DNA of 64,000 bases, taken from assembly GCF_963506605.1 (NCBI RefSeq), contig NC_083281.1:27528001-27592000 (forward strand). Direction: 5' to 3'. This stretch comes from Zootoca vivipara. Lineage: Eukaryota. The notes below the pieces were generated by a model. That model was not told the origin of the DNA. It worked only from the letters and a program-made list of their open reading frames with translations, and made no database searches. Positions 9,103-64,000 of this stretch are shown in pieces; position 1 is the stretch's first letter, and the number at the start of each line of letters is the position of its first letter. Both the position numbers and the translations under genes were made by a program.

Positions 9103-9153
<51 letters not shown>

Positions 9154-17174: not shown

Positions 17175-18980
17175 TGAGAGAGATTAGAAAATATTACCAA
17201 ATATTTTTCAGACCAATACCGAGCCGGACCAGAAGATAAAATAGAAATTGAAAGATATATAAGACTAAATAAGTTGCAAAAATTCCAAATGAAAAATTGA
17301 ATATTTTAAATGTACCAGTTCATATAGCAGAAATCTCAAATGCCATTAAACAAGCAAAAACAGGAAAAGCACCAGGCCCAGATAGACTAACAGCAAAATA
17401 CTACAAATAAAATTAGAAAATTACTTAATTCACCCACTACAAAATGTAATGAACGAAATATTAAAGATTGGGGAAATACCAAAGACTTGGAAAGAGGCCT
17501 TTTTTACTCTAATTCCAAAGACAAGAGACAGACAAAATGGAAGTTAAGAATTATAGACCAATCTCATTATTAAACAGTGATTATAAATTGTATGCAAATA
17601 TATTAGCTAATACAGTGGTACCTCGGGTTAAGAACTTAATTAGTTCTGGAGGTCCGTTCTTAACCTGAAACTTCTTATCCTGAGGTACCACTTTAGCTAA
17701 TGGGGCCTCCTGCTGCCACTGCACTGCTGCCGCATGATTTCTGTTCTCATCCTGAAGTAAAGTTCTTAACCCGAGGTACTATTTCTGGGTTAGCGGAGTC
17801 TGTAAGCTGAAGTGTCTGTAACCTGAAGCACTACTGTAGAATGAAAAAACATATTATTAGAAATAATACATCAAGACCAAACAGGATTTCTGCCAGGAAG
17901 ACATATGAAAGATAATATAAGGAATGTAATTTATATTACTGAATACCTGGAAGTAAGGAATGAAAAACAGGCAGCAATGATGTTTGTAGATGTGGAAAAA
18001 GCATTTGATAATGTTTCCTGGACCTTTATGTTGAAAAAAGTAAACATGAAACCCAATTGGGCAACATATAGAGAGGTAACAGATTGGTTACAATATTTTC
18101 AATTAAATGAAACATTTAAAAATGATAAAAAGAAAGGATTTGCATATGAAATTTCAAAATTCCAGAGAGAAATAATGGAAAGTGAATATAAATTACTATC
18201 AAAAATGTATAATATTTTGTTGGAATGGGAAACAAAGGATGAAGAGGTAAAAAGTGTTATGATAAAATGGGCAAAATATGTGGGACATAATATACAGATG
18301 ACAAATCGGGAAAGATTATGGAAAAATGATATAAAATTTCTAGCATGTACAGCTCTTAAGGAGAACTATATGAAAATTATGTACATATGGTATCTAACTC
18401 TGGTTAAATGATCAAAATGCATAAGACAAAAGATAATAAGTGCTGGAAGTGTAAAGAAGTAGTAGGTACATTTTACCATATGTGGTGGCAATGTAAGGTT
18501 ATAAAAAGGTTTTGGGTAAATGATTCATGATGAATTGAAAAAAAATGTTTAAAATCACCTTTGTTAAAAAGCCAGAAGCTTTCTTAATAGGTATAACTGG
18601 AGTGGATATACCGAAATACAAAAATGTGTTTATGTATGCAACAACAGCTGCCCAGATATTGATAGCTCAACATTGGAAAGAAGAACAAGTCCCAACTAAA
18701 GAAGATTGGCAACTTAAATTAATGGAATATGCTGAAATGGCTAAATTAAGTGGAAGACTAAGAAATCAAGACAACAAATATAAAAAAGAATGGAAAATGT
18801 TTATTGCATATTTACAAAAGCATTGTAAAGAAGTTAATACAATAGCAGGTCTTTAAAAACAATTGTAATATTAAGGAGAATGTTTAAAATTGGAAATAAT
18901 TAAGGATAAAGAAATTATAGGCATGTATAATATGAGATATTATAAAAGAACCAGGGGAGGAACTGGAGGGGAGTTATGAA
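17175..18980 (+). mobile_element. Degraded, internally deleted L1-clade LINE ORF2 and 3' end
   Basis: GKAPGPD, NYRPISLLN, DVEKAFDNVSW, C-terminal CWKC...HMWW motif; interrupted by a MITE. Confidence 0.85.
17613..17836. mobile_element. Tc1/mariner (Tigger-like) MITE inserted in L1
   Basis: CAGTGGTACCTC...CTACTG ends, TA TSD; removing it restores the L1 reading LANRMKK. Confidence 0.8.
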
Positions 18981-41796: not shown

Positions 41797-44700
41797 ATGA
41801 GACTACGCCCCCTACTGTTCACAGAACTAGCACTGGGTAAGTATGTCTTCTTCTTCAAAAAATTCCACCCTCCCCAAGCCTACCCAAAGGATCAGAGAGC
41901 CAATGAAAAAGCCTGTGTTCAGTACTGTATTAGCCATTGTGGGCTATGTTATATGCTTTTAGAGGTGCTATGAATAAGACTTTTCTGCTCTGAAGCAATG
42001 CATGCCAAGTGATAGAGATTTTCTTGACTTGTTGGCCATAGTCAGATGGGGGGAAGTGTATCTGGCCAGCAGGTAACCCATCAGGTGACTTGTTCTTAGA
42101 AAGCCCTGGGGATCAGCTGATTGCTGGGGCTCATAGCTGCCAACTCTCCCATTTCCCCTGGGAAATCCCCGTTTTTCTAGCTGTTCCTAGCTGAAAAAAA
42201 CGGATTTTTTTGTTTTTCCCCGGTTTATTCTGGCGCGGTGGCCATTTTGGAACTGGGCGGAGCATGCTCAGAAGTGACTTTTGATGCTGCTTTGCCCAGT
42301 TCCAAAATGGCTGCAGTGCGACTTCTGGCGCGGTGGCCATTTTGGAACTGGGCAAAGCAGCATCAAAAGTCACTTCTGAGCATGCTCCGCCCAGTTCCAA
42401 AATGGCGGCAGCGCTACTTCCGGTCTGCTATTTCCGCCCGGTCCCTTATTTCTCTGACAGCAACTTGGCAGGTATGCTGGGGCTTGCAAAGCACAGCGCC
42501 TGTGCAGGGCTATGCAGATGTTGCCAATCATCTTTTTGGCAGTGCCTACAACCCCCCTTCCAGTTCATCCATATATTTACCTGCCCTCAACCTGAGGTCG
42601 TATATGTCAGGTATAGGGCAGGTGGGCGTGGTTTGCCTAAAACAACCTCCCGTCCCAAATGAAAAGGCTTGGCAGGCATAATTAGGGCCACAGACTGCAG
42701 GTTCCCCAGCACTGGGGATGATTCTCGCATAGGGCATGATAGGTCCTAAGCTCAAATCCTAGAGAAGCCCTGTATGTAGGAAAGGAAGCTATCAGATCTT
42801 TTGCAGCCCAAAGCCTGAGGCTCAAGTAGTGGGTTTAATGATGTCTCTAGGTGTTGGTGTCATTGAGACAGGGCCTGGTAATGTCACAACTCTTGAAACA
42901 AACATAGGGCATGCAGGTCAGGCATGGTACATGACCTCTTGATGATTGGGTGCAGCCTAGAGTTAAAGGGATAGCACTAGAGATGTTCAGCAGGTGCCTG
43001 AGCTCTTGCTAATTCCATTGACTAACTTGCTTCTAATTCTAGCACTACAGATGCTATTGTTGGGAGAAGTAGCTGAGGCAGGTAAGTTGAATTCAAGTAC
43101 TCCAAAGCCCATCAAACAGCCTCCCCCAACGTGATGCCCTCTAGTTGCTTTACATTTGAGTAGTTTTAGCAGATCACAAAGGAGTTGCTTCAGCCCTTCG
43201 GCGCACGACCGGCTCTCTTTTCTATGCAACTATTAATGGGCCTCAATTTACATTGAAGTGTTTTATTTTCTTTGCACTGGGCTCAACTAATATGTGCTGA
43301 GGTGAAGATGTGGTCACACTTTTGTGATCCCCCCCAGATTTTATTAAAACTTTTTCATAACACAATAAGATGAAATAAACTAATCTAATAAAAACAGAAA
43401 TGGGAGAGGGGGGGAGAAAAGGCAGAGTCCTCTTTCAAATGCAGCTCTTCTCTCTCACAGAAAGTGGTAGACCCTCCCAGCTTTCCTTTCTTCTCCCAGT
43501 CTCTGAAACTGGGAGTTCTTCCCTGCCCTCTTTTCCACATGGCCACTGTATTGAAATATTAAAATGAAGTGCAATTTTCTTTCTGGAAGCTGTGACATTG
43601 CATGGTAGTATTCACAACATTCCTCCCTACTATTACTCACGATTTCTTTCCCGATTCTCTTCAGACGAACTGCTCTACCCGTATGGACCCAAACACCAGG
43701 ACAGAACCACCCCAAAGGCAGATGACGGGGCATCTCCTCAGATCCCCATCTCTGAGAGCTTCTACTTTTACGCCAGGAGGTATCAGTCTCTTTATGTAAG
43801 TATCACCCTGATGGTTCTCATGACCCTCTGTAGCCCTTTCCATTTACAGCAGAAAGCTCTCTGGAGATTCCCCAACTGTCTAGAAGGCAAAACCAGCCTG
43901 TGATACCCCAGACCAGGGGTAGTGGTGCTTTTCAGATCTTGGTGACCTTCAACTTCCATCATCCCTGACCATTGGCCATGTTGGCTGGGAGTGATGGGAG
44001 CTGTAGTCCAGCAACATTTGCATAGCATCACATTGGCTATCTCGTCCACAGACTTCCAGGAAGAACGCCAGGACTGGCAGGTTAATTTTTTTCACACTTT
44101 CCTTCAAAAAGCAAGGACCATCCATGATGTTCCAAAGATGACAAAAATTTCACCTGGGATAATCTACTTTTTAAATAAAAAAACGTTCTGTAGAATCAGG
44201 GGAGAAGTTGGCAGAGGGAGGGGGATTCTCTAATCCAGGCACCCCCAAACTTCGGCTCTCCAGATGTTTTGGACTACAATTCCCATCTTCCCCGACCACT
44301 GGTCCTGTTAGCTAGGGATCATGGGAGTTGTAGGCCAAAACATCTGGAGGGCCACAGTTTGGGGGTGCCTGCTCTAATCAGAGATGGCCATGTTGCTTGA
44401 TCACACCTCTAAAGGCAGCAGTGTTGGACAAATAGTCCAACTGGTACATCAGGAGAGGGGAATCTGTGTCTTTCTAGCTGCTGCTGCAACTGCCATCATC
44501 TCTGACCACGTTGGTTTGGTCTGGAGCCCAACAGCGCCTAGAGGGGCACAGCTTCCCCATCTCTGATCTACATATTGGCAGATGGGCCACTGACACCTTG
44601 CAACAACCCAGGACTCCTTTAAGAGTCTTACAGAAGAGCAGCTATACAACTATCAAAAGTGTGGGGGCCCCTGTCTTCTTTTTCACCTGACCACTCTTAG

Positions 44701-47700
44701 TGAAAAGTGAGAGTATGCATGGAGGACTATATTATATTTCATTATTTTTTTAATACGACATTTTATTTTATTTTGCTTAATTAATTTGATTCACATACTG
44801 CCCTTCATCATAAGATCTCAGGGTGGTTCACAGAATAAAATAGAGGAAAGAAATAAGTAAATAAGTAAAACAAAACAGAAAAAAACATACTCCACCCCGC
44901 CCCTTCTCACAGACACATGTAAAAGGCTGGAGAATATTCATCAGCCAAAGGCCTGGTTGGTTATAGGGCTGCTATACATCCGGATTTTCCTGGACATTAC
45001 CAGGATTTCAAAGGCGGAACTGACGTCCGGGGGGAATTTCCAAAAGGTGGCGCTTTGTTCTGGATCTTAGGAAAAAGCTTTTGGGTTTTTACTTTTTGAA
45101 ATATGGCAACCCTAATGAAGAGGAACTATATTAGAAACATTGAGTAATTTTCTGCTCTGTGTCTTTGGAGGGTGCTTGGAATGGGACAGCTAGCTAGCTA
45201 GCTTGATATTTAACAGAGAAGCTAGGGCATTATTCCAAGNNNNNNNNNNNNNNNNNNNNNNNNNNNNNNNNNNNNNNNNNNNNNNNNNNNNNNNNNNNNN
45301 NNNNNNNNNNNNNNNNNNNNNNNNNNNNNNNNNNNNNNNNNNNNNNNNNNNNNNNNNNNNNNNNNNNNNNNNNNNNNCTTTACCTCGCCCCCCCCCCAGG
45401 TGAACAATAATGGAGTGGTGTCATTTGGTAAGCCGGTCAGCCAGTTCACTCCTGATCCTTTCCCCTTGACGGATGGACGGGCCTTTGTCGCTCCCTTTTG
45501 GGCTGATGTCGATAACCGCATCACCGGCGAGGTCTACTACAGGCAGAGTCAAGAAAAGCATCTCCTGCAGAGAGTCACAGGTGACATCAACACTTACTTC
45601 CCGAGTGAAAAGTTCACGGCTACCTGGGCCTTCATAGCCACTTGGGACCAAGTGGCTTTCTATGGATCCCTGTCCTCCAAGGTACGATTCTTTGATCATT
45701 TCTTCATGACGGCATTTCACTAACACACCAAAAACAGCTGTATACATGACAACACTGGCTGCCTGAGTACAGTTCACTGGCATGCAAATAGCAGCTGTGG
45801 GGAAGACTGAGCAGCTTCTGGACCAAGGGGATTGGGGAGGAGAAATTTAATTTTTTCTCTCCCTGCCAAATTCTTCTTGTAACTGCTATTTGCATTTCAA
45901 GGGAATGTGCTAGTGGTACCATGTGAGACTTTGCTGGAAATGCAAATAACATGTTCAGTATTGTGATATTTGCCAGGACCACAGCAGGGAGGGAGGGAGA
46001 ATTACTCATGCCCCTGCTTGGTCTTTCTTAGGGCTGCCAGACGCAGACAAGGACAGAGCTCCTACGCCTTTAATAGTTGAGTCCAAGGGAATTTCAGCAG
46101 ATGCACCTGCTGAAATCCGTTTTTTGGCATAATTATCAAAGGTGCAGGAGCCCTGTCCCATTTTTGCACCTGGTTATCCTAGTCTCCCCTGCAGCTGCTA
46201 CTTACAGAACCAAAAAAGGTGTGTTGATTGCATTTCCACAATTAACATCCCTTCTAGTTTGGCCCTAAACTAGGCATCCCCAAACTGCGGCCCTCCAGAT
46301 GTTTTGGCCTACAACTCCCATGATCCCTAGCTAACAGGACCAGTGGTTGGGGAAGATGGGAATTGTAGTCCAAAACATCTGGAGGGCCGAAGCTTGGGGA
46401 TGCCTGCCCTAAACCATTCACTTCCATGGATCCAATATGGAGCAAATATAATGGCTGCCCAGGCTTTCCTACAGCTGCTATTGATGCAACAAAATGGATG
46501 AACATTAATTGCATTCGCACAGTTAGTGTCACCATCTGCTGTGAACTTCAGGTGGCCAATGAATAAATCTCAAACTTTGGTTCAAACAGCTGCAAACCCA
46601 GGGGTTACCAAAGGGGCTCCTGCCAGATGTCAGTGGACTACAACTTCCATAATCCCTAGTTTGTTGTGGGGGAGGAAGGGAAAGGAGAATGTTAGCCGCT
46701 TTGAGACTCCTTTGCGTAGTGATAAAGCGGGATATCAAATCCAAACTCTTCTTCTTCTTCTGACCATTAGCCATGCAACTTCTGGAAGACTCCACATTGG
46801 CTATTCTTGCTCAAACCTTTCCTGATTTGAACGCTACAGTAATACTCACTCCATAGCACCCAGCTCTAGCCTATAATAAGGCTTTATTTTAAAAAAGAAA
46901 AAAGCAGAAAAAATATTACAAGAGGAGGGGTGGGAAGGAAGGGGTGGTTTTATTGAAAACGCCGTCTTCATCTGGTGAAAATAAAGGCTGTTTTCTCCCA
47001 TTGCAACCTGGGCCCTGCTTTACTTGTGTTTAACTGTAACCTGGCATGTATTTAATGTGCCATAAAAGTCACAATAAATCCTGATTAAATGCCTGGTTAA
47101 GAATTTTAAACCCTTGGGACACCGTGACCAGATTACAGAGCAGAGTAATAGTTCTACCAGCTGACAAAATCAAGGGAACTGTAAGTAGACGGCTTATTGC
47201 TTTCTGCTCCAGTTAACCGCAGTCTAAAAGCAAACAATATTCACTGGAATAAAGGAGGAAGATGCCACTCCCACTCGTGTACACATTCAAAAATTGTCCA
47301 TATGAATTCAATGGTACACCCTTAAGGGCCAAACAAATGCAATGAATGCTTTTGAATTTTAAATTCATGTTTGTTTTTCTCATATACACGCGACAAACCA
47401 TTCAATCATAGGGTGCTTCCAGAATGTGCTGTTTATGGTTTGGGATTCAATCACATACCAGCAAAACTCTGGTTGTGCAATTGTAGTTGATGGGGAGGTC
47501 CTGTGCAAGAAATCCACTTCCCCAGAATATTGGACCTTTTGTGCTAAGGAAAGTGACCAGACAATGCAGTGGGTAGTGTGGGTGTGAGATAACTGTTGCT
47601 TTGATGCAACATCCTCCTACTGTTGTTGTTGTTTAGTCGTTTAGTCGTGTCCGACTCTTCGTGACCCCATGGACCATAGCACGCCAGGCACTCCTGTCTT

Positions 47701-50700
47701 GCACTGCCTCCCGCAGTTTGGTCAAACTCATGTTCGTAGCTTCGAGAACACTGTCCAACCATCTTGTCCTCTGTCGTCCCCTTCTCCTTGTGCCCTCCAT
47801 CTTTCCCAGCATCAAGGTCTTTTCCAAGGATTCTTCTCTTCTCATGAGGTGGCCAAAGTATTGGAGCCTCAGCTTCACGATCTGTCCTTCCAGGGAGCAC
47901 TCAGGGCTGATTTCCTTAAGAATGGATAGGTTTGATCTTCTAGCAGTCCATGGGACTCTCAAGAGTCTCCTCCAGCACCATAATTCAAAAGCATCAATTC
48001 TTCGGCGATCAGCCTTCTTTATGGTCCAGCTCTCACTTCCATATATCACTACTGGGAAAACCATAGCTTTAACTATACGGACCTTTGTCGGCAAGGTGAT
48101 GTCTCTGCTTTTTAAGATGCTGTCTAGGTTTGTCATTGCTTTTCTCCCAAGAAGCAGGCGTCTTTTAATTTCGTGACTGCTGTCACCATCTGCAGTGATC
48201 AAGGAGCCCAAGAAAGTAAAATCTCTCACTGCCTCCATTTCTTCCCCTTCTATTTGCCAGGAGGTGATGGGACCAGTGGCCATGATCTTGGTTTTTTTGA
48301 TGTTGAGCTTCAGACCATATTTTGCGCTCTCCTCTTTCACCCTCATTAAAATGTTCTTTAATTCCTCCTCACTTTCTGCCATCAAGGTTGTGTCATCTGC
48401 ATATCTGAGGTTGTTGATATTTCTTCCGGCAATCTTAATTCCGGCTTGGGATTCATCTAGTCCAGCCTTTCGCATGATGAATTCTGCATATAAGTTAAAT
48501 AAGCAGGGAGACAATATACAACCTTGTCGTACTCCTTTCCCAATTTTGAACCAATCAGTTGTTCCATATCCAGTTCTAACTGTAGCTTCTTGTCCCACAT
48601 AGAGATTTCTCAGGAGACAGATGAGGTGATCAGGCACTCCCATTTCTTTAAGAACTTGCCATAGTTTGCTGTGGTCGACACAGTCAAAGGCTTTTGCATA
48701 GTCAATGAAGCAGAAGTAGACGTTTTTCTGGAACTCTCTAGCTTTCTCCATAATCCAGCGCATGTTTGCTATTTGGTCTCTGGTTCCTCTGCCCTTTCGA
48801 AATCCAGCTTGCACTTCTGGGAGTTCTCGATCCACATACTGCCTAAGCCTGCCTTGTAGAATTTTAAGCATAACCTTGCTAGCGTGTGAAATGAGCGCAA
48901 TTGTGCGGTAGTTGGAGCATTCTTTGGCACTGCCCTTCTTTGGAATTGGGATGTAGACTGATCTTCTCCAATCCTCTGGCCATTGCTGAGTTTTCCAAAC
49001 TTGCTGGCATATTGGGTGTAGCACCTTAACAGCATCATCTTTTAAGATTTTAAATAGTTCAGCTGGAATATCATCACTTCCACTGGCCTTGTTATTAGCA
49101 GTGCTTTCTAAGGCCCATTTGACTTCACTCTCCAAGATGTCTGGCTCAAGGTCAGCAACCACACTACCTGGGGTGTACGAGACCTCCATATCTTTCTGGT
49201 ATAATTCCTCTGTGTATTCTTGCCACCTCTTCTTGATGTCTTCTGCTTCTGTTAGGTCCTTACCACTTTTGTCCTTGATTATGGTAATCTTTGTACGAAA
49301 TGCTCCTTTCATATCTCCAATTTTCTTGAACAGATCTCTGGTTTTCCCCATTCTATTGTTTTCCTCTATTTCTTTGCATTGCTCATTTAAGAAGACCCTC
49401 TTGTCTCTCCTTGCTGTTTTTTGGAAATCTGCATTCAGTTTCCTGTATCTTTCCCTATCTCCCTTGCATTTTGCTTGCCTCCTCTCCTCCGCTATTTGTA
49501 AGGCCTCGTTGGATAGCCATTTTGCTTTCTTGCATTTCCTTTTCCTTGGGATGGTTTTCGTTGCTGCCTCCTGTATAATGTTACGAGCCTCCATCCATAG
49601 TTCTTCAGGCACTCTGTCCACCAAATCTAAATCCTTAAACCTGTTCCTCACTTCCACTGTGTATTCATAAGGGATTTGATTTAGATTGTATCTTACTGGC
49701 CCAGTGGTTTTTCCTACTTTCTTCAGTTTAAGCTGGAATTTTGCTATAAGAAGCTGATGATCTGAGTTACAGTCAGCTCCAGGTCTTGTTTTTGCTGACT
49801 GTATAGAGCTTCTCCATCTTTGGCTGCAGAGAATATAATCAATCTGATTTCGATGCTGCCCATTTGGTGATATCCATGTGTAGAGTCTTCTCTTGTGTTG
49901 TTGGAAGAGAGTGTTTGTGATTACCAGCTTGTTCTCTTGACAGAACTCTATTAGCCTTTGCCCTGCTTCATTTTGAACTCCAAGGCCAAACTTGCCAGTT
50001 GTTCCTTTTATCTCTTGATTCCCTACTTTAGCATTCCAATCCCCTGTAATGAGAAGAACATCCTTCTTTGGTGTCATTTCTAGAAGGTGTTGTAGGTCTT
50101 CATAGAATTGGTCAATTTCACTTTCTTCAGCACCGGTAGTTGGTGCATAAACTTGGATTACTGTGATGTTAAAAGGTCTGCCTTGGATTCGTATCGAGAT
50201 CATTCTGTCATTTTTGAGATTGCATCCCATTACAGCTTTTGCCACTCTTTTGTTGACTATGAGGGCCACTCCATTTCTACTACGGGATTCTTGCCCACAG
50301 TAGTAGATATGATAGTCACCCGAACTGAATTCGCCCATTCCCTTCCATTTTAGTTCACTGATGCCCAGGATGTCGATATTTATTCTTGTCATCTCATTTT
50401 TGACCACATCCAGCTTACCTCCACTCATGGTTCTTACATTCCAGGTTCCTATGCAATATTTTTCTTTACAGCATCGGACTTTCCTTTCGCTTCCAGGCAT
50501 ATCCGCAACTGAGCGTCCTTTCGGCTTTGGCCCAGCCGCTTCATCAGCTCTGAATCTACTTGTACTTGTCCTCCGCTCTTCCTCAGTAGCATGTTGGACG
50601 CCTTCCGACCTGAGGGGCTCATCTTCCAGCGTCATAACTTTTATATGCCTGTTGTCTTTGTCCATGGAGTTTTCTTGGCAGGGATACTGGAGTGGCTTGC

Positions 50701-53700
50701 CAGTTCCTTCTCCAGGTGGATCACGTTTAGTCAAAACTCTCCACTATGACCTGTCCATCTTGGGTGGCCCTGCATGGCATAGCTCATAGCTTCTCTGAGT
50801 TATTCAAGCCCCTTCGCCACGACAAGGCATTGATCCATGAAGGGGATCCTCCTACTACTTTCCCGCAAACAAATGAGACTGGATGCTCATTGATTAGCCA
50901 ACTTTGTCTAACCTCCCTGCAAACAAACCAGGATAACTGCTCAATAAACGGGTTGTCTGGGAGTGGCCAGAGAAGCTATAAACAATACATACCTCACCAT
51001 CCAGGAAGGTGGATTTACGCTATGGATGCTCCTCTGCCTCTTATACAGTACATGGGTAAATTAGGGAGCTTCAGAAGAAGGAATTGACCACTGAAAGGCA
51101 AGCTGTACCCATCTACATTCCAGTTGCATTATTCTACCTGTATATAAAGGGATTGAACCTGGGACCTTTTGCATGCAAAACACAAGCTCTAACACTGAGC
51201 TGTGGCCTCACAGAAACTCTGCTCTGGGTACCGAGTTTTATTGCTGATGCTATTCCACATTATACAGGAAAAAGTGCAAAGCATATGGATATGAGAGACA
51301 ACCAGTCATTATACACCTGCTGTAGGGAAGAGGGTGCTGATATTACCCATTGATCATGCATTTGGTGTTGGTTTTTAGTAATTGGGTTAGAGAATAAAAG
51401 GCGAATTCCCTGGATGCCTAGATCCAAGTTTGGGGCAAGTGTTATTTGGTGAGAGAGTCCCAGCAGAGATTTAAAATAACAAAACATACACCAAACTAAA
51501 GTGTGGAAATATAGGCCATTTGACATTTAAAATATCCCCTTCTAAGTTTCTTTTAAAGTTTCCCACTTAGCATAAAAAACACATTTGACAAGTTAAAAAT
51601 AGTTTATTTACAAACTCTTTGACGGTCAGATTCATGCGCTTTTCCATACAGCAGCTAGAAAAGACAGGCAGCACAACTTAGTTTCAAAAAGTGGTTAATA
51701 CTTCTAAATTATTTGTATAGAAACACAAAGATGGCTTGCTAAAGCCATGTGGTCTAAGCTTGGAGCATTCAGCTTAGACATCCTTACATAAAGGGTTCAC
51801 ATAGTGAAAGAGAAAGAACAAAGAGTTTGGTAACCTTTCCTTCCAAGGTGAGGATGTGGGACCCAGCTAAGCCTGGCAGGACTACTTACTCTATGATATT
51901 AACCCCTTAATAGCAGGGACGTGGGTGGTGCTGTGGTCTAAACCACTGAGCCTCTTGGGCGTGCCAATTGGAAGGTTGGCAGTTCGAATCTGTGCAACAG
52001 GGTGAGCTCCTCTTACTCTGTCCCAGCTTCAGCCAGCCTAGCAGTTTGAAAGCATACCACTGCAAGCAGATAAATAGGTACCACTGCGGTGGGAAGGTAA
52101 ACAACCTTTCCGCGCGCTCTGGCTTCCATCATGGTGTTCCATTGTGCAAGAAGCAGATTAGTCATGCTGGCCACATGACCCAGAAAGCTGTATGTGGACA
52201 AATGCCAGCTCCCTTGGTCTGAAGCGAGATGAGTGCCACACCCCACAGTTGCCTTTGACCATCCAGGGGTCATTTTACCTTTTACCTTTACCTTAACTCC
52301 TTAATGCATTAATTAGAGTTAAGCATGTTGGTTACATGAGACTGACATATCCCACATTTGACACCTGTTTTGTATAGGTGAACACATTCCAGGCTGTTTT
52401 AACCTCCAATGGTAAACTGTCTTTCGTTATACTGAACTATCAGGACATCCAGTGGATCTCAGGGCAGGCAAGTGGTGGAGATGCTCACACCGGCTTGGAG
52501 GGCACACCTGCTCAGGTAAGTCCCACCTGTGGTTACATGCTGAAAAGAAGTAGTAGTCCTAAACATCAAAAGGGCACCTGATTGATGAAGGTAGATGATC
52601 TGGTTGATCCAGTTCAGCAGTTCACTGTATGTTATGTCACCAGGAGGAAGTGAAGTTACCTAGCAAACCATGTATTCTGGAGACACATGAGCAGAACTCT
52701 CATCCTTTGCTCATGTTCCATTTCTCTCTTCTAGGCTGGATTTAACAATGGGGATGCAAACAACTACTTCAACATCCCTGGATCTTGGACTCCAAACATC
52801 ATTAACGTCAGCTCCACGAGTAACATCATGGACCCTGGGCGCTGGATCTTTGAGGTGGATGTCTTTGCAGTGCCAAATGGCTGTGTTTACAAAGGTATGT
52901 TGATTGCGATTCATCTAGAAGAGCTATGAAGGATTCAGATCAAATTCTTCTAAAATCTTGGGTAGAGTTGTAAGGGAAGAATAGAACATCTGCTTTGCTA
53001 CCAGCTCCACACCCACCAACCCCTGTCCTCCCAGGCCTCACCAAATTCACCCACTTCCCTTAGACCTCCTCCCACTGCTCCTGCTTATACTGCCTGCTTC
53101 ACTCCAAGGATGCTGTTTCAGATCAGAGGTGGAGGGCAAGGAAGAGGGAAATGGCAGGATGGTAATGGCAGAGGGCAAGGAAGAGGCAGCATAGCAGGAT
53201 GGTAGCTGGGCAGTTGCCTAATCCTGTTTTGTGCCCTGCCCACCTACCTCTGTCTCCCTCCTCTGCGCCCCTTCTCCTTGGACACCAGCAGCTCTCAGAA
53301 ATGTGCCACCATGCTGTGATTTGCAACACCACCTGTTGGTAGCCATGCAGACAGCAGCATGGCAACAGGGTAAGACCTAGGGTAGGGAAACTGGATCCAG
53401 ATAATGGGCCAGATCCTTATCCCCCTGCCATGGATGATCCTGCCCAGCTATCAATCACCCAATGTCAGAATGTTGGGTGACCCATTTATGCCCGCATGGA
53501 CAGTCAGCTGACCACCAGGGCTTTGCAGGTGTCACCAATCAGCTGATTGGCAGTGCCTACTAACAGCCATGGGTCCTTTCATGTCTTTACCTATCACACA
53601 CCTGAAATCATATATGGCATCAGGTGTAGGACAGGTGGATGTGCCTTGACTTGCCCCCAACTCCCTTGGGAGCCAAATGAGCAGGCCTAGTTGCCCTGTG

Positions 53701-55713
53701 GGTTGGAGGTTCCCCACCTCTGCCATAAGGGAAGGGTCATCGGTCGGTGGTACAGCTGATGCTTCACATCTTCAGTGAAGTGGCCAGATGAAGGCAGAAA
53801 TGTCTTGGAGAGCCTTGTCTAGGTGGACCTTGTATAAGGCAGATTTTCTGTATATCCATCTTATTGCCGTTAAATTTTAGCATCTCTTTCCTGCTTTGAC
53901 TAATATGTGCTGTTCTAACCTCATGTGTGAGGTTTGCATTGGCTATTGCTTCAGTTGGGTTTGTAATGTGACTATAATTAAACCAGAATGCTCTTGCGCA
54001 AGCTATTGGCACAATCCCTTCTGGTCACTTAAGTTGCTTATGACTTGCATTCTGTCTTGATAGCTAATTTCCTGCCAGTCAGTGCCACCTTCTGGACTGA
54101 ATCAGCTTGCGAGGAGAAGTGCCAGTGCACGTCTGAAGATCCCAGGGTGACGTGCCAGGCCAGTGGGTGCTCTGCAGATGAGATTTGCCAGCCGAATTCC
54201 TGGTACCATGTGTGCCGGCCCACCCATAAGGCCACCTGCCACGCCTTAGGTGGGCGACACTACACCACCTTTGATGGCCGACTATATCAGTTCCAAGGCA
54301 ACTGTGTTTATGTGCTGTCTCAGATGTGTGCACCCTCAGACAACCGCAGCCTGGAGTATTATCGGGTGGAAGCAGGGATTTCAGGGAAAACCCCAGAAGT
54401 GTCACAGATAGAGCACTTGCGCATGATGGTCTATGGACAGGACATTGCTGTAATAGCCAATTCTGCTGGGCATGTCATGGTAAGTGCTTTGAATTCAACA
54501 GCCAAGATAAATCCTAAACTCTCCAGATTTCCCTCTGCTCTTCTTCCCTTATTTACTATTTTTCTTTTTCTCTTTGCAGCCTCCCCTCTCCCCACACCAT
54601 TTTCGCTCAAGGGAATCTGCAAAACAGATTCTCTACCCCTGAGCTAGCCTATGAATCCTGCACCACACTGAGCTATGATCCTGCTTTCTTTGCAGGTGAA
54701 TACTGGAATAGATACAGGAACATAATAGTGTCCATAATTCCATGAGTTCAGATCTCGGATGTCTGTCTGGATAGATCTCAGATCTATCCAGAACTGTTAT
54801 CATGTGGGGCTTTAAACACCAGCATCACTTTCTTAAGTACAATCTTACAATCTTAGCCAGAGCTAAGCTATGGCTTTTAACTCTGCTTTATTCTGCTGAA
54901 CCCCCTTCTAGATCAATGGAATCAAGAGCCTTCTTCCTGTGACCCTCCTTGGTGGCAAGGTCCGAGTGCATCAGAGTGGATTCTCAACTACGATAGCCAC
55001 TGATCTAGGGGTGGAAATTTCCTACAAGGGGAGTCAACATGTGGAGGTTGCTGTTCCTGCCAGCTACCATAATGCCACCTGTGGCCTCTGTGGAACCCTG
55101 AATGAAAACCCCACTGATGATTTCTCGACTCCAAACCGATCCCTCGCGGCATCAGCAGCTCTGTTTGCTAAAAGCTGGCAGGTGCACTATGCGGAGGACC
55201 AGTGTGGGGACACCCAAGAGTTGCCAAGCTGCCCTTCAACTGAACTGGCTCTTTTTTCCAGCCCAGAGTACTGCGGCATCCTGAAGGAATCTCCGGGTCC
55301 TTTTGCAAACTGTGCAAAGGCTCTGCCTCTCTCCAGCTTTATGGAAAGCTGCACGTATGATCTTTGCACATCTGCGGGCAATCGGACGGTACTGTGCGAA
55401 TTTCTCCATATTTATGCTGGAAGTTGTCAGGCAGCAAACGCCACAGTTGGGCAGTGGAGATCGGATGAATTTTGTCGTGAGTCAACAATAATAATTGTGG
55501 TGACAATCACCTCTGAGCCCCTGTTTTCCAGTCTAGGCTTGTTGCGAGGACGGCCTGGTGGGGTAGGGAGCCTGAGGCCTAGCAGCTAAATGCAGCCTCT
55601 CTAGGGGCTGAAGGGACTTTGGGTTCAACAACACCTGGGAGGCCATAGGTTTCCCACTGCTATCTTATGAGAGAGGGCCAGAAGAAGGCAGCCCCTGGTT
55701 TCCTCGGGTGAAC

Positions 55714-55761
<48 letters not shown>

Positions 55762-56600
55762 CCCAGGGTTTCCTAAATTTGAGTCTCCAGCTCTTTTTGG
55801 ACTACAATTCCCATCATCTCTGACCACTGGTCCTGCTAGCTAGGGATGATGGGAGTTGGAGTTCAAAAAGCAGCTGGAGACCAAAGTTTGGGAAACCCTG
55901 GTATCAACTCAGGTACCGTTTGCATGATTCAGGAACCTAATTTTCTTTTCAAGCCCAGCCATGCTATTCAGTAGGGTGAAGCAACCTTCTTCAGCTTGGA
56001 GAGAGTTGGTAAAGGCATAAATGGCTGTTCGAATGGTGCAGCACAACTTTATGAAAAATTGGGCTTAATAGAGTGTGTATGTTTGCACTCCTCTCCAGGA
56101 AGCAAAATGTCTTGGGCCAGCACTGATTTCCTCTACCCCTCTTCATACATCCTTTCTCCATCAGGAATCACTTGTCCAGAGAACAGCCATTATGAGCCTT
56201 GCTCTACTGCCTGCCCAGCCAGCTGCTTGGATTCCACGGCCCCACTTTATTGCAACGAGCCTTGCAGGTAAGGACAGGCAAATCCATCAGTTTTGGTTTT
56301 CCAGTCACATTCTCTACATTCTTAGTTTGAATTTTTTTTAAGTCCTCAAGAGAATCCATCAGCATTTTATTGCAAATTTCTCCCAATAGACACATATTTG
56401 TGTACAATTTCCCCTAATAGACAGAATTATGCAATGTAATTCCCGCTAATAAAATGCATTTTTTTGTATCTTATTTTCACAAATGTATGCATTTTTATGC
56501 ACACTTTACCTCAGCATATGCCAAAAAATGCAAAGAAGAAGAAGTCCCAGCAAAAGAAGAATGGATACAAAAACTTGTGGAATGTGCAACTTTCTGCAGA

Positions 56601-56643
<43 letters not shown>

Positions 56644-59600
56644 TATTAATATTTATACCCCGCCCATTTGGCTGGGTCTCCCCAGCCACTCTGGGTGGCT
56701 TCCAACAGAAGAATAAAACACAATAATCTATTAAACATTAAAAGCCTCCCTGAACAGGGCTGCCTTCAGATGTCTTCTAAAAGTCTGGTAGTTTTTTTCC
56801 TTTTTGACATCTGTTGGGAGGGCGTTCCACAGGGTAGGCGCCACCACCGAGAAGGCCCTATGCAAAACTTACCGGAAAAATAAGAAATCAAGTTAACAAA
56901 CTTTTAATAAAAGAATGGAAATGGTTTATTTAATATTTACAAACTGTAGACAGATTAGAACATTGGCAGGATTGTTGTAATAACCTGCAGTTTTATAAGA
57001 GTATACATTTAAAGTAGATGAATAAATGAGCAAATTAAGTTAATTTGGATATGCAGAAAATATCAAAAATAAATGTAAGGAACTGCAAAAAGGGGGGAAG
57101 GAAGTCACATTTTGAAATGTTAAAATGATTGTAAAATTATTGAAATGTATAAAATTGAAACTCATAAAAAGCATATGCATTTCTGTACACATTATTGGCT
57201 GGAATACTGCAGTGCAAAATTTGCAGGAATTTCGGTTTTGATACTGGTAGTTCAAATTAGGTGGACTCGCCTCTAGACATGGGTGCCAACTTCCTTGGGC
57301 CCTGGGTGCCCGAGCACCCACAAAATTCTCCATGAAGGGGCCAGGCACCCACAAATTTTGGTGCCAGGGCTGTGCATGCTACATGGCACTCACGGCCCCA
57401 GGCTCCCATGGTTGCAGTGCCAAGCTGACGCTCCTGCCTCTAAATGTGAACTGAATGGAATTTCTTCCCCGTCCCCTACTTGCAGGGAGGGCTGCTTTTG
57501 CAACAGAGGCTACATTCTTAGCGGAGGAGCTTGTGTGCCCCTGGACCATTGCGGCTGCACTCTGAACGGCCGGTATTACCAGGTGGGAGATGACGTGATC
57601 CTGACAGATACCTGCAGCCAGAAATGCTCCTGTAGGCGCCCTTCTCACCCCATGGAGTGCCAGAAGCATGAGTGTGGGGCTCTGGAAACATGCAGAGTTG
57701 TGGGCGGCGTGCTGGGCTGTTACCCGGCGACCTTTGGCAACTCCTGGATGTTTGGGGACCCCCATTACATCACTTTTGATGGGGTCGCATTTGACTACGA
57801 GGGAACGTGCAAATACACGCTGAGCAAGTACTGTGCCCCCCAGGGAGCCCTCCCTTACTTCGCCATAAAAGTGGAGAACGAACACCGGGGCTCCTTGGCC
57901 GCAACATGGGCACGTCTGGTAGAGATAGATGTCTATGGGGAGCACATTGCCATAGCGGCTGGTCAGTACGGCAAAGTGCAGGTAAGGACCTTGTCCATAT
58001 TCTTTCCTTGTCTGGTTCCACCTGGCATTATTTTGTGTTGCATGGCAGAGAAGGATGTCAATGGTTGGATGCACAAACTCTTGAGCAGGCTTGGCAGAGG
58101 AGGAGGAACACGGGCTGAACGCAGATCCAGACCTGGATCCCTGTCGTCACGCTCAACGGGATGCATGTTCTTAATTGTGTTTTTTATTTATTTGATGGTA
58201 TTTGTATACTAGTTGATCGTAGGGTTGCCATATGTCTGGAACTTCCCGGATCCATCCTGAATACTGCATTCGGCAGCAGTGTCCAGGCAAGTCTAGTCGT
58301 ATGGCAAGCCATGTCAGTAGTGTCATTTTCACTTGTTTTCCTTAAGAGTAGCTCAAAAGCATCATTTTTTGTGTGTGTGTGATTTTGCAAAAAAGAACAT
58401 CAACAACTTTGGCCAAAAGCAAAACAAAACAAAAAACTCAATGACTTTTCACTCTGGATTTTCACGGTCCGGATTCTTATAAGCAGTTTACAGAAAATAA
58501 AATGCACATTAAGATTATAAGTAAAAGTCATTTAACCTACTCCCCTCCCAAAAAACATATAAATAAAATCATTTAAAAAAAAAAGATACGTTGTTTTCAG
58601 CACTATACCTCCAGCATCTATCTGAATTAGACACTGCCTTTCTATACAAATATTGTGCAGTCCAAGGGCTGGTGTCCATCCTGGCTCTCTTGCAAATGTG
58701 GATCCTGAATCAGCAGGGGGCGCACACATAAAACCCTCCTCCTGCGTATGAATGACCCTTTGCTACAAATGGTTGTCACCTATACTTTTGAATTCATGTT
58801 GCAACTTAAGCCGGTGGCTCTTATTTGGCTGGTACAATATCTTACTTACTAGTCTTATTTTGGATCTAGCCAGTACTTTTTTTCTGGGGGGGATGCAGGG
58901 GTTCACATACCCCCTAAACATTTTTTGTTTTGTTTTTCAATATCAGTAGGAAAATGAGAGTACCCCTAAACATTTTTCAAGGAAAAAAACTACTGGCTCT
59001 AGCTATTTATTGTAGCTGTGCTAGGATGTACTAAACCAGCAAATTCTGAAGATGCCAAGGTTTGGCCAGTGAGAAATGGTGCAATGGTAAAACCTTCAGA
59101 AGGTATTACATCCACAACTGAAATGTTTACTTGCTTATTAATCAGGGGGGGGGGGTTACAGTTGGTTTTCGAACAGCTTAGTTCTCGAATGTTCTGGATT
59201 GCTTAATATGTAAAGTAAGTGTGCTGCACCCTTTTGTTAAGTGGTGGAAGGAATGTAACTCTGGGTTAAATTGGTTGCTATTCAGTAATCCCCCAAGAGC
59301 ACTCTGTGGTCCAACCACTAATATGCAGCACAAATCTATCTGACAGAAATGTGGGCAGAGAAAACCACATCAGTAATTTATTATTATTATTGAAATCAAT
59401 AAAGTGGTTTGCTCATTAAAGTAGGCTTGGCTACGTCCAACCACAATTCGGCTTGAGGAATGTATGCTGCACCAGCTTAAAAAGTGCTTTGATAGACAAA
59501 TCACATGCACCTCTACTATACTTGTTTGGGAAATGGGGGGGGGAGGACTGGGCTGCAACAGAGCCATTTCCCTCTGGGAACATTGGAAGCTGCTTTTAAT

Positions 59601-62600: not shown

Positions 62601-64000
62601 TTCGAGAGCTGCGTGAAGGATATGTGTGTCACGAACGGCAGCAATTTGTGCGAGGTCCTGGGCACATACGCCCAGCAGTGCCAAATTCACGGAGCCACCA
62701 TTAAGCCCTGGAGAGAGATCACTGGGTGTGGTAAGGGATTGCCAACTGGCATGTGAACTGCAATAGCAATACTGGTCACAGTGTTTTAGAGCAGTGGCTC
62801 TCAGACTGTGGCCTGCGAACTCTATTCAGGTGGCTCACAAAAAAACGGTTGCAGAACTGTCAAGAATATATGTTTTGGGCTAGGCACTTGATTTATTATT
62901 TCTGACAGTTGAGATCTTTTAGGGCTGGATTATTGAACAGGCTAATAAGGCCCCAGCCTGGGGCCAATGATTGTCATAATATGTTGCAGGCACGGTCCAT
63001 TTACTACTACTTCTTCTTTTTTTAAAAAAGAGATGTCAGTTAAAGACAAGGCTACAAGTTATGTTATGCATAGCTGCCAAGTTTTCCCTTTTCTCGCGAG
63101 GAAGCCTATTCAGCATAAGGGAAAATCCCTGTAAAAAAGGGATAACTTGGCAGCTATGATGTTATGATTTCTAGAATGAGAAAGAAAAGCTTATTAAATA
63201 TCCCATTGGGATCCCCCAGCAATTTTTTCAACTGGTTTACAGAAGGAGATTTATTTTTTTTAAGAATCACTGCTTTAGTGTATTCAAAGAACTTTGAACA
63301 CATTTTCTCACTCATCCTTGCAACAGTCCTATAAGGTAGGGGGGTGAGGTTGGGACTGAGAAATTAAGGCTGGCAAAAACAGCATCAGTGCCTGCTAAAG
63401 CCCCAGCACCAAAACAAAGTTCACCACTGAGGTCTGCTCTGCAATTCTCCTTTAAAAAAACAAAAAAGTTGTATCTGCCAAGGTGCCCATTGCAATCGAC
63501 TCCTCTACAGTTTTGACATATTTACTGACACCAGAATAGTTTCTTTAATTACTTTAGTGGTTTGTAATAGTTTCAAATGTAATTAAAGATAAGAGCTGGT
63601 CTTTCCCCTAGAGATTCATCTCCAGTGCCATAAGCAGTGCTTCAGCAAATGCTGTAATTTCACCTCTCTCCTGGTTCATGCATCCTTCTGAAAGGATTTC
63701 TCTATCCCTCATCAGCTTGTTATCTCTGTCCGTGGAGATAAGAACAACAGATAACTCTGTCATAATTATTCGCCACTTAATTACAACTTTCGGGGAGCTC
63801 CGAAAGCTGCGACTGACCTGCTTAGCTCCTTCCCGGAAGTCCGTCTCCTCTACAGTGTTGAAGGAGCTGCACTTTTGCATTCTCAATATCTTTTTGTTTG
63901 TGCTTGTTTCAGAGTTGCTCTGCCCTGCCAACAGCCACTATGAGCTCTGTGGACCTTCCTGCCCTCCTTCTTGCACCCACCCAGCTGTGCCCTCCAGTTG
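41797..64000 (+). CDS. Alpha-tectorin-like / FCGBP-like secreted glycoprotein (signal-NIDO-VWC-VWD-C8-TIL-VWC-VWD-C8-TIL...), 3' end outside the window
   Basis: Exons 41797-41836, 43043-43081, 43665-43795, 45400-45681, 52378-52515, 52735-52894, 54064-54479, 54912-55476, 56165-56267, 57486-57981, 62172-62730, 63913->64000. All GT-AG, phases compatible, no stops. [17 protein letters not shown] is shared with TECTA; FGDPHY, CGLCG-like and TIL motifs present. Confidence 0.92.
42132..42476. mobile_element. MITE with an internal perfect 71-bp inverted repeat
   Basis: CATAGCTGCCAA...TTGGCAGGTATG ends; arms at 42241-42311 and 42336-42406. Confidence 0.75.
43665..43795 (+). CDS. Tectorin-like exon (DELLYPYG...YQSLY)
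   Basis: 131 nt, AG/GT boundaries. Confidence 0.9.
44236..44371. mobile_element. 136-bp hairpin hAT-type MITE
   Basis: Same family as 11462-11597; TSD CTCTAATC. Confidence 0.9.
45240..45377. other. Assembly gap (N run)
   Basis: Run of N just upstream of an acceptor site. Confidence 1.
45400..45681 (+). CDS. Tectorin-like NIDO exon (VNNNGVV...SLSSK)
   Basis: 282 nt. Confidence 0.93.
46271..46406. mobile_element. 136-bp hairpin hAT-type MITE
   Basis: Same family as 11462-11597; TSD CCCTAAAC. Confidence 0.9.
47622..50845 (-). mobile_element. Full-length BovB (RTE) LINE, about 3.2 kb
   Basis: 11-bp TSD ATCCTCCTACT, (CAA)n tail, single intact ORF. Confidence 0.96.
47633..50734 (-). CDS. BovB ORF: APE endonuclease plus reverse transcriptase, 1033 aa
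   Basis: [26 protein letters not shown] (APE); [30 protein letters not shown] (RT). Confidence 0.96.
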   Translation of the reverse strand: MTKRDPPGEGTGKPLQYPCQENSMDKDNRHIKVMTLEDEPLRSEGVQHATEEERRTSTSRFRADEAAGPKPKGRSVADMPGSERKVRCCKEKYCIGTWNVRTMSGGKLDVVKNEMTRINIDILGISELKWKGMGEFSSGDYHIYYCGQESRSRNGVALIVNKRVAKAVMGCNLKNDRMISIRIQGRPFNITVIQVYAPTTGAEESEIDQFYEDLQHLLEMTPKKDVLLITGDWNAKVGNQEIKGTTGKFGLGVQNEAGQRLIEFCQENKLVITNTLFQQHKRRLYTWISPNGQHRNQIDYILCSQRWRSSIQSAKTRPGADCNSDHQLLIAKFQLKLKKVGKTTGPVRYNLNQIPYEYTVEVRNRFKDLDLVDRVPEELWMEARNIIQEAATKTIPRKRKCKKAKWLSNEALQIAEERRQAKCKGDRERYRKLNADFQKTARRDKRVFLNEQCKEIEENNRMGKTRDLFKKIGDMKGAFRTKITIIKDKSGKDLTEAEDIKKRWQEYTEELYQKDMEVSYTPGSVVADLEPDILESEVKWALESTANNKASGSDDIPAELFKILKDDAVKVLHPICQQVWKTQQWPEDWRRSVYIPIPKKGSAKECSNYRTIALISHASKVMLKILQGRLRQYVDRELPEVQAGFRKGRGTRDQIANMRWIMEKAREFQKNVYFCFIDYAKAFDCVDHSKLWQVLKEMGVPDHLICLLRNLYVGQEATVRTGYGTTDWFKIGKGVRQGCILSPCLFNLYAEFIMRKAGLDESQAGIKIAGRNINNLRYADDTTLMAESEEELKNILMRVKEESAKYGLKLNIKKTKIMATGPITSWQIEGEEMEAVRDFTFLGSLITADGDSSHEIKRRLLLGRKAMTNLDSILKSRDITLPTKVRIVKAMVFPVVIYGSESWTIKKADRRRIDAFELWCWRRLLRVPWTARRSNLSILKEISPECSLEGQIVKLRLQYFGHLMRREESLEKTLMLGKMEGTRRRGRQRTRWLDSVLEATNMSLTKLREAVQDRSAWRAMVHGVTKSRTRLND
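51916..52294 (+). mobile_element. Sauria SINE
   Basis: GGGACGTGGGTGGTGCTGTGG head, (ACCTTT) tail. Confidence 0.85.
52378..52515 (+). CDS. Tectorin-like NIDO exon (VNTFQAV...TPAQ)
   Basis: 138 nt. Confidence 0.93.
52735..52894 (+). CDS. Tectorin-like exon (AGFNNGD...NGCVYK)
   Basis: 160 nt, phase 0-1. Confidence 0.92.
54064..54479 (+). CDS. Tectorin-like exon (VWC and N-half of VWD1)
   Basis: 416 nt; [10 protein letters not shown]. Confidence 0.92.
54912..55476 (+). CDS. Tectorin-like exon (C-half of VWD1 and C8)
   Basis: 565 nt; TCGLCG, GPFANC, WRSDEFC. Confidence 0.93.
55717..55759. repeat. (GT)n microsatellite
   Basis: Direct reading; a hairpin MITE follows at about 55764-55900. Confidence 0.95.
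56165..56267 (+). CDS. Tectorin-like exon (N-half of TIL1)
   Basis: [18 protein letters not shown]; ends in phase 2. Confidence 0.92.
56269..57478. mobile_element. hAT-type non-autonomous element that forms an entire intron, with nested L1, L2 and MITE insertions
   Basis: 8-bp direct repeat CTTGCAGG at 56261-56268 and 57479-57486; imperfect TIRs TAAGGACAGGCAAATCCATCAGTT and (reverse complement) TAGGGGACGGGGAAGAAATTCCATTCAGTT. Confidence 0.78.
56522..57169 (+). mobile_element. 5'-truncated L1 3' end, itself interrupted by a minus-strand L2 3' end (about 56601-56858)
   Basis: [17 protein letters not shown]; TSD AGCATATGC (56513-56521, 57170-57178). Confidence 0.78.
57486..57981 (+). CDS. Tectorin-like exon (C-half of TIL1, VWC, N-half of VWD2)
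   Basis: [18 protein letters not shown]...[11 protein letters not shown]. Confidence 0.93.
60220..62098 (+). mobile_element. 5'-truncated L2-clade LINE with RT domain
   Basis: ORF 60522-61616 has [21 protein letters not shown] and LKLNPSKTE; internal deletion near 61540; ataaat/att tail. Confidence 0.9.
62172..62730 (+). CDS. Tectorin-like exon (C-half of VWD2 and C8)
   Basis: 559 nt; LNGILLQLP...[12 protein letters not shown]...WREITGC. Confidence 0.92.
63069..63158. mobile_element. 90-bp hAT-type mini-MITE
   Basis: TIR CATAGCTGCCAAGTT; TSD ATGTTATG. Confidence 0.88.
63913..64000 (+). CDS. Tectorin-like exon (TIL2), truncated by the window edge
   Basis: [18 protein letters not shown]. 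Confidence 0.88.

Follow-up and report, generated by a model that had tools for sequence, protein, structure and literature searches.

A probable transposon-derived intron with a legible insertion footprint in a predicted alpha-tectorin-like gene of the lizard Zootoca vivipara

Introduction

How does a new spliceosomal intron come to lie in a coding exon of a land vertebrate? Intron gain is considered very rare in vertebrates, and a readable mechanism is rare in land vertebrates. The question is raised by a 64,000-nt stretch of the genome of the lizard Zootoca vivipara (NCBI RefSeq assembly GCF_963506605.1, contig NC_083281.1, positions 27,528,001 to 27,592,000 of the forward strand; hereafter the window, in whose coordinates all positions are given), where an intron interrupts the TIL domain of a predicted alpha-tectorin-like gene and is bounded by two copies of an 8-bp sequence, CTTGCAGG. 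An earlier note on this DNA, made from its letters, had taken the intron for a transposon of the hAT superfamily.

As a whole, the locus is probably best explained by a hAT-like element that inserted in a 599-nt exon and became a precisely spliced intron. The direct repeat, the inverted ends, the exon arithmetic, the absence of the intron from orthologues and paralogues, and its presence in congeners are directly observed. The sections below take these observations in turn and weigh them against other ways in which the intron might have come about.

Results

A phase-two intron within a TIL domain

The + strand carries, between 43.6 and 64 kb, a gene in which NIDO exons (43634-52905) are followed by VWD, C8 and TIL/TILa units, as found by tblastn with homologues and by Pfam; the exons were searched singly, by reference. 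Among named proteins, those closest to it are annotated in snakes, turtles, salamanders and sharks as "alpha-tectorin-like" and "IgGFc-binding protein-like". The predicted product has the domain order of the NIDO/VWD-C8-TIL protein type, alpha-tectorin-like or IgGFc-binding-protein-like (FCGBP-like), that is, NIDO and then repeated VWD-C8-TIL-TILa units.

The coordinates of the intron, its flanking exons and the inserted DNA are collected in Table 1. The upstream exon, with its acceptor, cag|GA, at 56164/56165, matches positions 1-31 of the 55 positions of Pfam TIL (E 3e-5), and the downstream exon, whose translation begins (R)EGCFCNRGY... and retains every cysteine, matches TIL positions 33-55, TILa and VWD. 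The intron cuts the profile at position 32, in agreement with the phase-two, TIL-splitting intron described in the earlier note, and homologous proteins continue gap-free from 56265 to 57487 (tblastn, alignment). The donor reads CAG|GTAAGG and the acceptor TTTCTTCCCCGTCCCCTACTTGCAG|G (...CTTGCAG|G), with a pyrimidine tract; GT-AG ends, tract and frame-restoring join together fit a spliceosomal intron predicted to be of the U2 type. Translation that runs on into the intron meets a stop codon at once (AGG TAA), as the same note had it.

The exon is unbroken in homologues

The state of the site in other, non-human vertebrates was read from gene-caller open reading frames (ORFs) on short genomic contigs. 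Informative ORFs open behind a stop codon of the upstream intron, cover the exon and continue into the intron that follows it. They are recognised by their read-through marks, such as ...LIFFFSG at the start, a translated pyrimidine tract, and ...Q|VR.. at the end, the in-frame translation of GTAAG. About 25 such genomic ORFs from many vertebrates cross the intron site unbroken, among them the snake orthologue P0237, the basal orthogroup member P0076, the turtle-type orthologue P0157, and some 20 paralogues. In six of them (P0237, P0076, P0157, P0095, P0108 and P0244), the exon has a length of exactly 199 full codons (599 nt), the sum of the 103 and 496 nt of the two lizard exons. The absence of the intron from outgroup homologues, which had been expected beforehand, is found at this level.

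In a maximum likelihood tree of exon-2 equivalents, the exon from the window belongs to a clade (support 98/96) with P0076, P0173 and snake proteins (Thamnophis P0163, P0158), while the turtle repeat and P0157 fall in an adjacent group whose branch is weakly supported (91/74). We considered whether snakes might also carry the intron, a hint given by the nearest ORFs, P0158 and P0173, which begin 17 codons past the junction; this was ruled out by P0237, an unbroken member of the 90% cluster of the snake ORF P0158 that reads ...FCPKPCREGCSC... across the site. P0237 is a genomic ORF, since neither of its flanks agrees with the spliced Thamnophis protein. A search of the protein collection with the exon-1 ORF (55975-56268) gave no match, implying that close intron-carrying relatives are missing from that collection. 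Because the exon is unbroken in the snake, in P0076, in the turtle-type orthologue and in the paralogues, the intron would have been gained in the lizard lineage, and there is little doubt, judging by these sequences, that it is a lineage-specific gain.

Some members of the family show features of their own. In P0076 (a Logan contig of 1945 nt), several conserved cysteines are replaced (EGCPRKRGYKLSRGTRVP; NNYSKKC) and the exon for the N-terminal part of VWD leads almost straight into the intron that precedes the TIL exon, so that the VWD-C/C8 exon has seemingly been deleted; the sequence looks like a decaying copy. In fish paralogues (genomic ORFs P0224-P0235), an intron-like read-through at the start is followed by ...LQ|AGESFWTEGCSQRCEC, which points to an extra fish intron about 35 codons downstream of the studied site (...LQ|AGESFW); the intron positions of this exon therefore vary across the family. 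In the lizard gene itself, the TIL exon of the next repeat unit begins at the very end of the window (63912-64000), which is cut off some 14 nt before the counterpart of the new intron would be reached, so that this gene's own paralogous site is unreadable.

An 8-bp direct repeat and inverted ends

The two copies of CTTGCAGG are identical, and because the bases just outside them are mismatched (56260 C versus 57478 A; 56269 T versus 57487 G), the repeat is exactly 8 nt long, at the coordinates that the earlier note had given, all of which are right. The 8-mer alone is common, with five occurrences in the window versus 4.2 expected, and four of its eight bases (CAGG) are splice consensus. An in-register repeat of at least 8 nt across GT...AG occurs in a fraction of 2e-4 of the roughly 2.1 million such pairs in the window; in five other introns of the same gene, the in-register junction repeats, read by eye, measure 1-3 nt. 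The splice geometry that had been proposed, in which the donor GT joins the G of the first copy to the T of the element and the acceptor AG comes from the second copy, is what the sequence reads.

Just inside the repeat, the ends of the inserted DNA form imperfect inverted repeats (TAAGG.../...CCCTA) that are similar from the first base on, as claimed before. The terminus-anchored inverted alignment, of about 24-30 nt, was matched by 33 of 20000 composition-kept shuffles and by two of 358 acceptor-like, pyrimidine-rich controls (p ~0.002-0.006). Lizard hAT families have been delimited by an 8-bp target-site duplication (TSD) and YARNG termini (PMC3014272). Here, the exact CTTGCAGG pair has the length of such a TSD and YARNG fits both ends, TAAGG on the left and TAGGG (reverse complement) on the right, so that the TSD and termini cited as hAT hallmarks in the earlier note hold against the published description (YARNG; PMC3014272). 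From the sequence, we infer a transposase-mediated origin and the hAT assignment; for the latter, we lean, if not strongly, towards a non-autonomous member of the hAT superfamily.

The left end of the element contains the exact 10-mer AATCCATCAG twice, 72 nt apart (56281-56290 and 56353-56362), and an inverted relative, ATTCCATTCAG, occurs in the right end (57449-57463). These copies could be a subterminal binding motif or a duplication left by a small later insert. As to whether a 62-nt insert between the AATCCATCAG copies (56281, 56353) conceals the left end of the family, its in silico removal made the inverted repeat no longer than before and is uninformative; the 10-mer is not enriched in the window.

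The inserted DNA is a composite

The earlier note had regarded the element as a simple miniature inverted-repeat transposable element (MITE). This did not hold up: the inserted DNA is a composite, with a 684-nt segment nested in an outer element and a repeat of the short interspersed element (SINE) type nested in turn in that segment. The 684-nt segment is flanked by an imperfect direct repeat of about 18-24 nt (56486-56509 and 57174-57197), and its core is an old repeat, of which copies of about 65% identity lie at 18669-18965 and 31723-32060 (blastn, nhmmer). Contigs in which 56510 is joined directly to 57195 occur in two related genomes; in a third, 56463 is joined to 57195 with 30 nt of diverged filler. 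The SINE-type repeat is bordered by AAAACTT at 56570-56576 and 56864-56870, has three further copies in the window (9109-9345, 39248-39502 and 26866-26999), and reaches a depth in the millions. Since copies of the 684-nt host repeat show the SINE-free joint of 56576 to 56862 (in all three related genomes), the SINE is nested in that segment.

Once the nested segment is removed, an outer element of about 526 nt is left (56269-56510 + 57195-57478). Its inner parts are present in some 130-250 copy-equivalents in related genomes, and the bin right after 56192-56328 in some 130-170 copy-equivalents in three of them. Contigs from other loci of these three genomes join 56508/56521 to 57441/57442 and continue for at most 30 nt into the right terminus. 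The joints at other loci, that is, 56510 to 57195 and 56508/56521 to 57441/57442, identify the outer element as a dispersed family with internal-deletion variants, which are typical of non-autonomous DNA transposons (PMC3014272). Of the proposal that the intron ends belong to a dispersed family, one part stands, the inner parts and the right end recurring in related genomes, and the other does not, the left 60 nt being at single-copy depth there. Exact-pattern scans of metagenome contigs found no match, nor did Rfam on 55600-58100. On the sequence as it reads, the intron was likely made by the insertion of a DNA transposon, with the target duplication supplying part of both splice sites.

Another repeat lies in the intron upstream of the TIL exon. 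The stretch 55781-55917 has a very high copy number, with a summed depth in the millions in the three related genomes, and is covered by thousands of RNA reads with loose ends that read ...GGCCCTCCAGATG... at either side; the stretch resembles a palindromic MITE and is adjoined by a (GT)n run at 55708-55766.

Age of the insertion and state of the gene

About 27% of the 31-mers occur in contigs of three related species, corresponding to a divergence of roughly 5%. The passage from exon 1 into the element is spanned by related-species contigs X13 record 10 and X15 record 20 (55837 to ~56550), and that from the element into exon 2 by X12 record 8 (57375-58100). Because the insertion is present in three congeners diverged by about 5%, it predates their split from the source species, in several individuals of which the whole stretch is present.

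The gene looks alive from its coding sequence. Compared with species B, the upstream exon at 54064-54488 has 11 synonymous and seven non-synonymous changes, and the downstream exons (496 nt and 576 nt) are open, with VWD/C8 profiles and all cysteines retained. Only the junction 56267/57486 restores the ancestral 599-nt exon. We infer precise splicing there from the open downstream exons, the synonymous excess, the strong splice signals and the restored exon length; no joint of 56267 to 57486 was among the joints listed for the DNA runs.

Weighing the alternatives

A number of observations weigh against a complete transposon that became a working intron. The left terminal 60 nt of the element (bin 56192-56328) stand at single-copy depth in the three related genomes, so that the left terminus is unseen in other copies at a likeness of at least 85%, and the 64-kb window holds no second copy of either terminus. 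A free (unanchored) local alignment of the termini is unremarkable (p ~0.03), and the YARNG match cannot be counted separately from the splice signals, because TAAGG and CCCCTA also resemble a good donor and a pyrimidine tract. The orthologue evidence comes from ORFs and not from orthologous DNA. Finally, RNA run X22 (about 6% read) has zero depth on all four exons at 54000-58100, which implies that the gene is silent in the X22 sample. The single-copy depth of the left 60 nt could be due to a later small insert between the AATCCATCAG copies; another possibility is that the element is a chimeric hAT derivative with foreign ends (PMC3014272).

The single-copy left end speaks for an alternative origin of the intron, by which a staggered double-strand break was repaired with captured filler that by chance contained part of a dispersed repeat, the 8-nt repeat arising by fill-in of the overhangs and no transposase being involved. 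A captured fragment fits the 60 unique nt beside repeated sequence better than a complete element does, and a new intron with a short flanking direct repeat is what break-repair intron gains look like (a mechanism listed in PMC12124190). We nevertheless consider this origin unlikely: the ends are similar in inverted orientation from the first base (at the anchored p given above) and fit YARNG, the 8 bp are the exact length of a hAT duplication (PMC3014272), and the right terminus recurs in other copies beside the left inner part.

The silence of all exons in X22 would also suit an insertion that is not spliced as proposed, whether because it disrupted the exon and left the gene, or the part downstream, to decay, or because the exon pair is skipped or spliced elsewhere; the gene family is, moreover, fast evolving, and the relative P0076 is pseudogene-like, with lost cysteines and a missing VWD/C8 exon. 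This is quite improbable, however, for an insertion that predates a divergence of about 5%: the 496-nt and 576-nt exons are still open with their cysteines and their VWD/C8 profiles, the upstream exon shows a synonymous excess, and splicing at the strong signals present gives the exact exon length, while only one random insertion in 64 should hit a target that ends in AGG.

That the intron is ancient and was lost separately in snakes, in the lineage of P0076, in the turtle-type orthologue and in all paralogues, its repeat and inverted ends being chance on top of splice consensus, is hardly credible, for although CAGG makes up half of the repeated bases, two ends are more alike in inverted orientation when one is a purine-rich donor flank and the other a pyrimidine tract, and intron positions do differ within the family (the extra fish intron), at least three exact losses would be needed in the orthogroup and the neighbouring group and many more in the paralogues, and the repeat (2e-4) and the anchored inverted ends (~3e-3) would occur together by chance with a probability of about 1e-6 per intron.

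Coordinates and neighbouring features

Table 1. Features of the interrupted exon and of the inserted DNA, in window positions
Feature	Position	Strand	Description	Evidence
Upstream exon, 103 nt	56165..56267	+	N-terminal TIL half; ends ...NEPC + AG of the split Arg codon	Translation, tblastn
Direct repeat copy 1, CTTGCAGG	56261..56268	+	Putative target-site duplication; the donor GT takes its G from the end of this copy	
Phase-two GT-AG intron, 1218 nt	56268..57485	+	Inserted 1210 nt plus one repeat copy	
Inserted composite element, 1210 nt	56269..57478	+	Bounded by the 8-nt repeat	
Left inverted terminus, TAAGGACAGGCAAATCCATCAGTT	56269..56292	+	Starts TAAGG; contributes donor positions +2 to +6, among them the T of GT	
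Nested 684-nt segment	56511..57194		Missing from other copies of the outer element	Joints, blastn, nhmmer
SINE-type repeat, (AAT)n end	56577..56861		Nested in the 684-nt segment	
Right inverted terminus, reverse complement TAGGGGACGGGGAAGAAATTCCATTCAGTT	57449..57478	-	On the + strand, polypyrimidine tract TTTCTTCCCCGTCCCCTA	
Direct repeat copy 2, CTTGCAGG	57479..57486	+	Provides CAG for the acceptor and G as first base of the exon	
Downstream exon, 496 nt	57486..57981	+	C-terminal TIL half, TILa, start of the second VWD	Translation, Pfam, alignment

Upstream of the region in Table 1, NIDO-coding exons are present twice in the window, at 27449-32782 and 43634-52905, both of which are matched by P0009 and P0023 in tblastn. 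A run of N at 45240-45377 stops 22 nt upstream of the acceptor for the NIDO exon starting at 45400.

Discussion

The course of events that we propose would start with a non-autonomous cut-and-paste DNA transposon that hit ...CCT TGC AG|G GAG..., a proto-splice site in the 599-nt exon coding for TIL, TILa and the start of VWD. This would have happened in the lizard lineage, after the split from snakes and before the source species split from its three congeners at about 5% divergence. The insertion would have duplicated the 8-bp target, CTTGCAGG. A strong donor, CAG|GTAAGG, would arise where the upstream copy ends in G and the element begins with T (TAAGG...), and an acceptor from the pyrimidine-rich right terminus, TTTCTTCCCCGTCCCCTA, together with the downstream target copy (CTTGCAG|G). 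The spliceosome would then remove the element together with exactly one target copy (1218 nt), which would restore the frame ...NEPC-R-EGCFC... with no codon gained or lost, while unspliced RNA would meet an immediate stop (AGG TAA). Later, the 684-nt repeat would have inserted into the element and the SINE inside that repeat.

Spliceosomal removal of a hAT element has a precedent in maize, where exon insertions of Ac/Ds elements are reportedly spliced from pre-mRNA (work of Wessler and colleagues); Ds splicing is usually imprecise and yields altered proteins in mutant alleles. The lizard case resembles this precedent in that a hAT-type element in a coding exon would be removed by the spliceosome with signals at or near its termini, and differs from it in that exact removal is predicted and the insertion is fixed across species.

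Another parallel is with introners, DNA transposons that generate introns in algae, fungi and further, mostly aquatic eukaryotes; surveys report neither introners nor recent intron gain for vertebrates (PMC9860276; PMC12130899). Shared with introners (PMC9860276, Fig. 2) are an element with terminal inverted repeats and a TSD in an exon, its (here predicted) precise removal, splice sites derived in part from the TSD, and an unchanged length of the mRNA, which for the lizard gene is read from DNA sequence and not from RNA. Introners, however, come in families, with many similar introns per genome, whereas here a single intron is known, in an amniote host, and the window holds no second copy. 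The window gives no sign that the family made other introns. The proposed mechanism is a known one, a TSD-assisted, transposon-made intron; what is new is the amniote host, and the footprint is unusually legible.

As for the element, the genome of Anolis harbours 32 families of non-autonomous hAT elements with about 24,000 copies (PMC3014272). With such lizard families, the element shares the 8-bp TSD, the YARNG termini, a length of a few hundred bp, internal-deletion variants, and a chimeric structure with captured or nested foreign DNA (PMC3014272); unlike them, its left terminus is unseen in other copies. In the human lineage, a survey of recent intron gain counted 342 cases and found a mechanism, intronization, for only three, its design not being aimed at transposon insertions (PMC12124190). 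The lizard intron is like those vertebrate gains in being lineage-specific, at a place where other vertebrates have exon, and unlike them in that the footprint of the insertion is still readable (PMC12124190).

The locus would provide a clean single case of an amniote coding exon in which an ordinary hAT-type element turned, in one step, into a spliceosomal intron. It suggests a genome-wide screen for introns whose ends coincide with the ends of DNA transposons and that are flanked by 8-bp repeats ending in AGG. It is conceivable, though very improbable, that a lizard hAT family with TA(A/G)GG...CC(C/T)TA ends constitutes a ready-made intron wherever it lands on AGG-ending targets and has made several introns in this genome and its relatives. 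If that were true, amniotes would have their first introner-like family.

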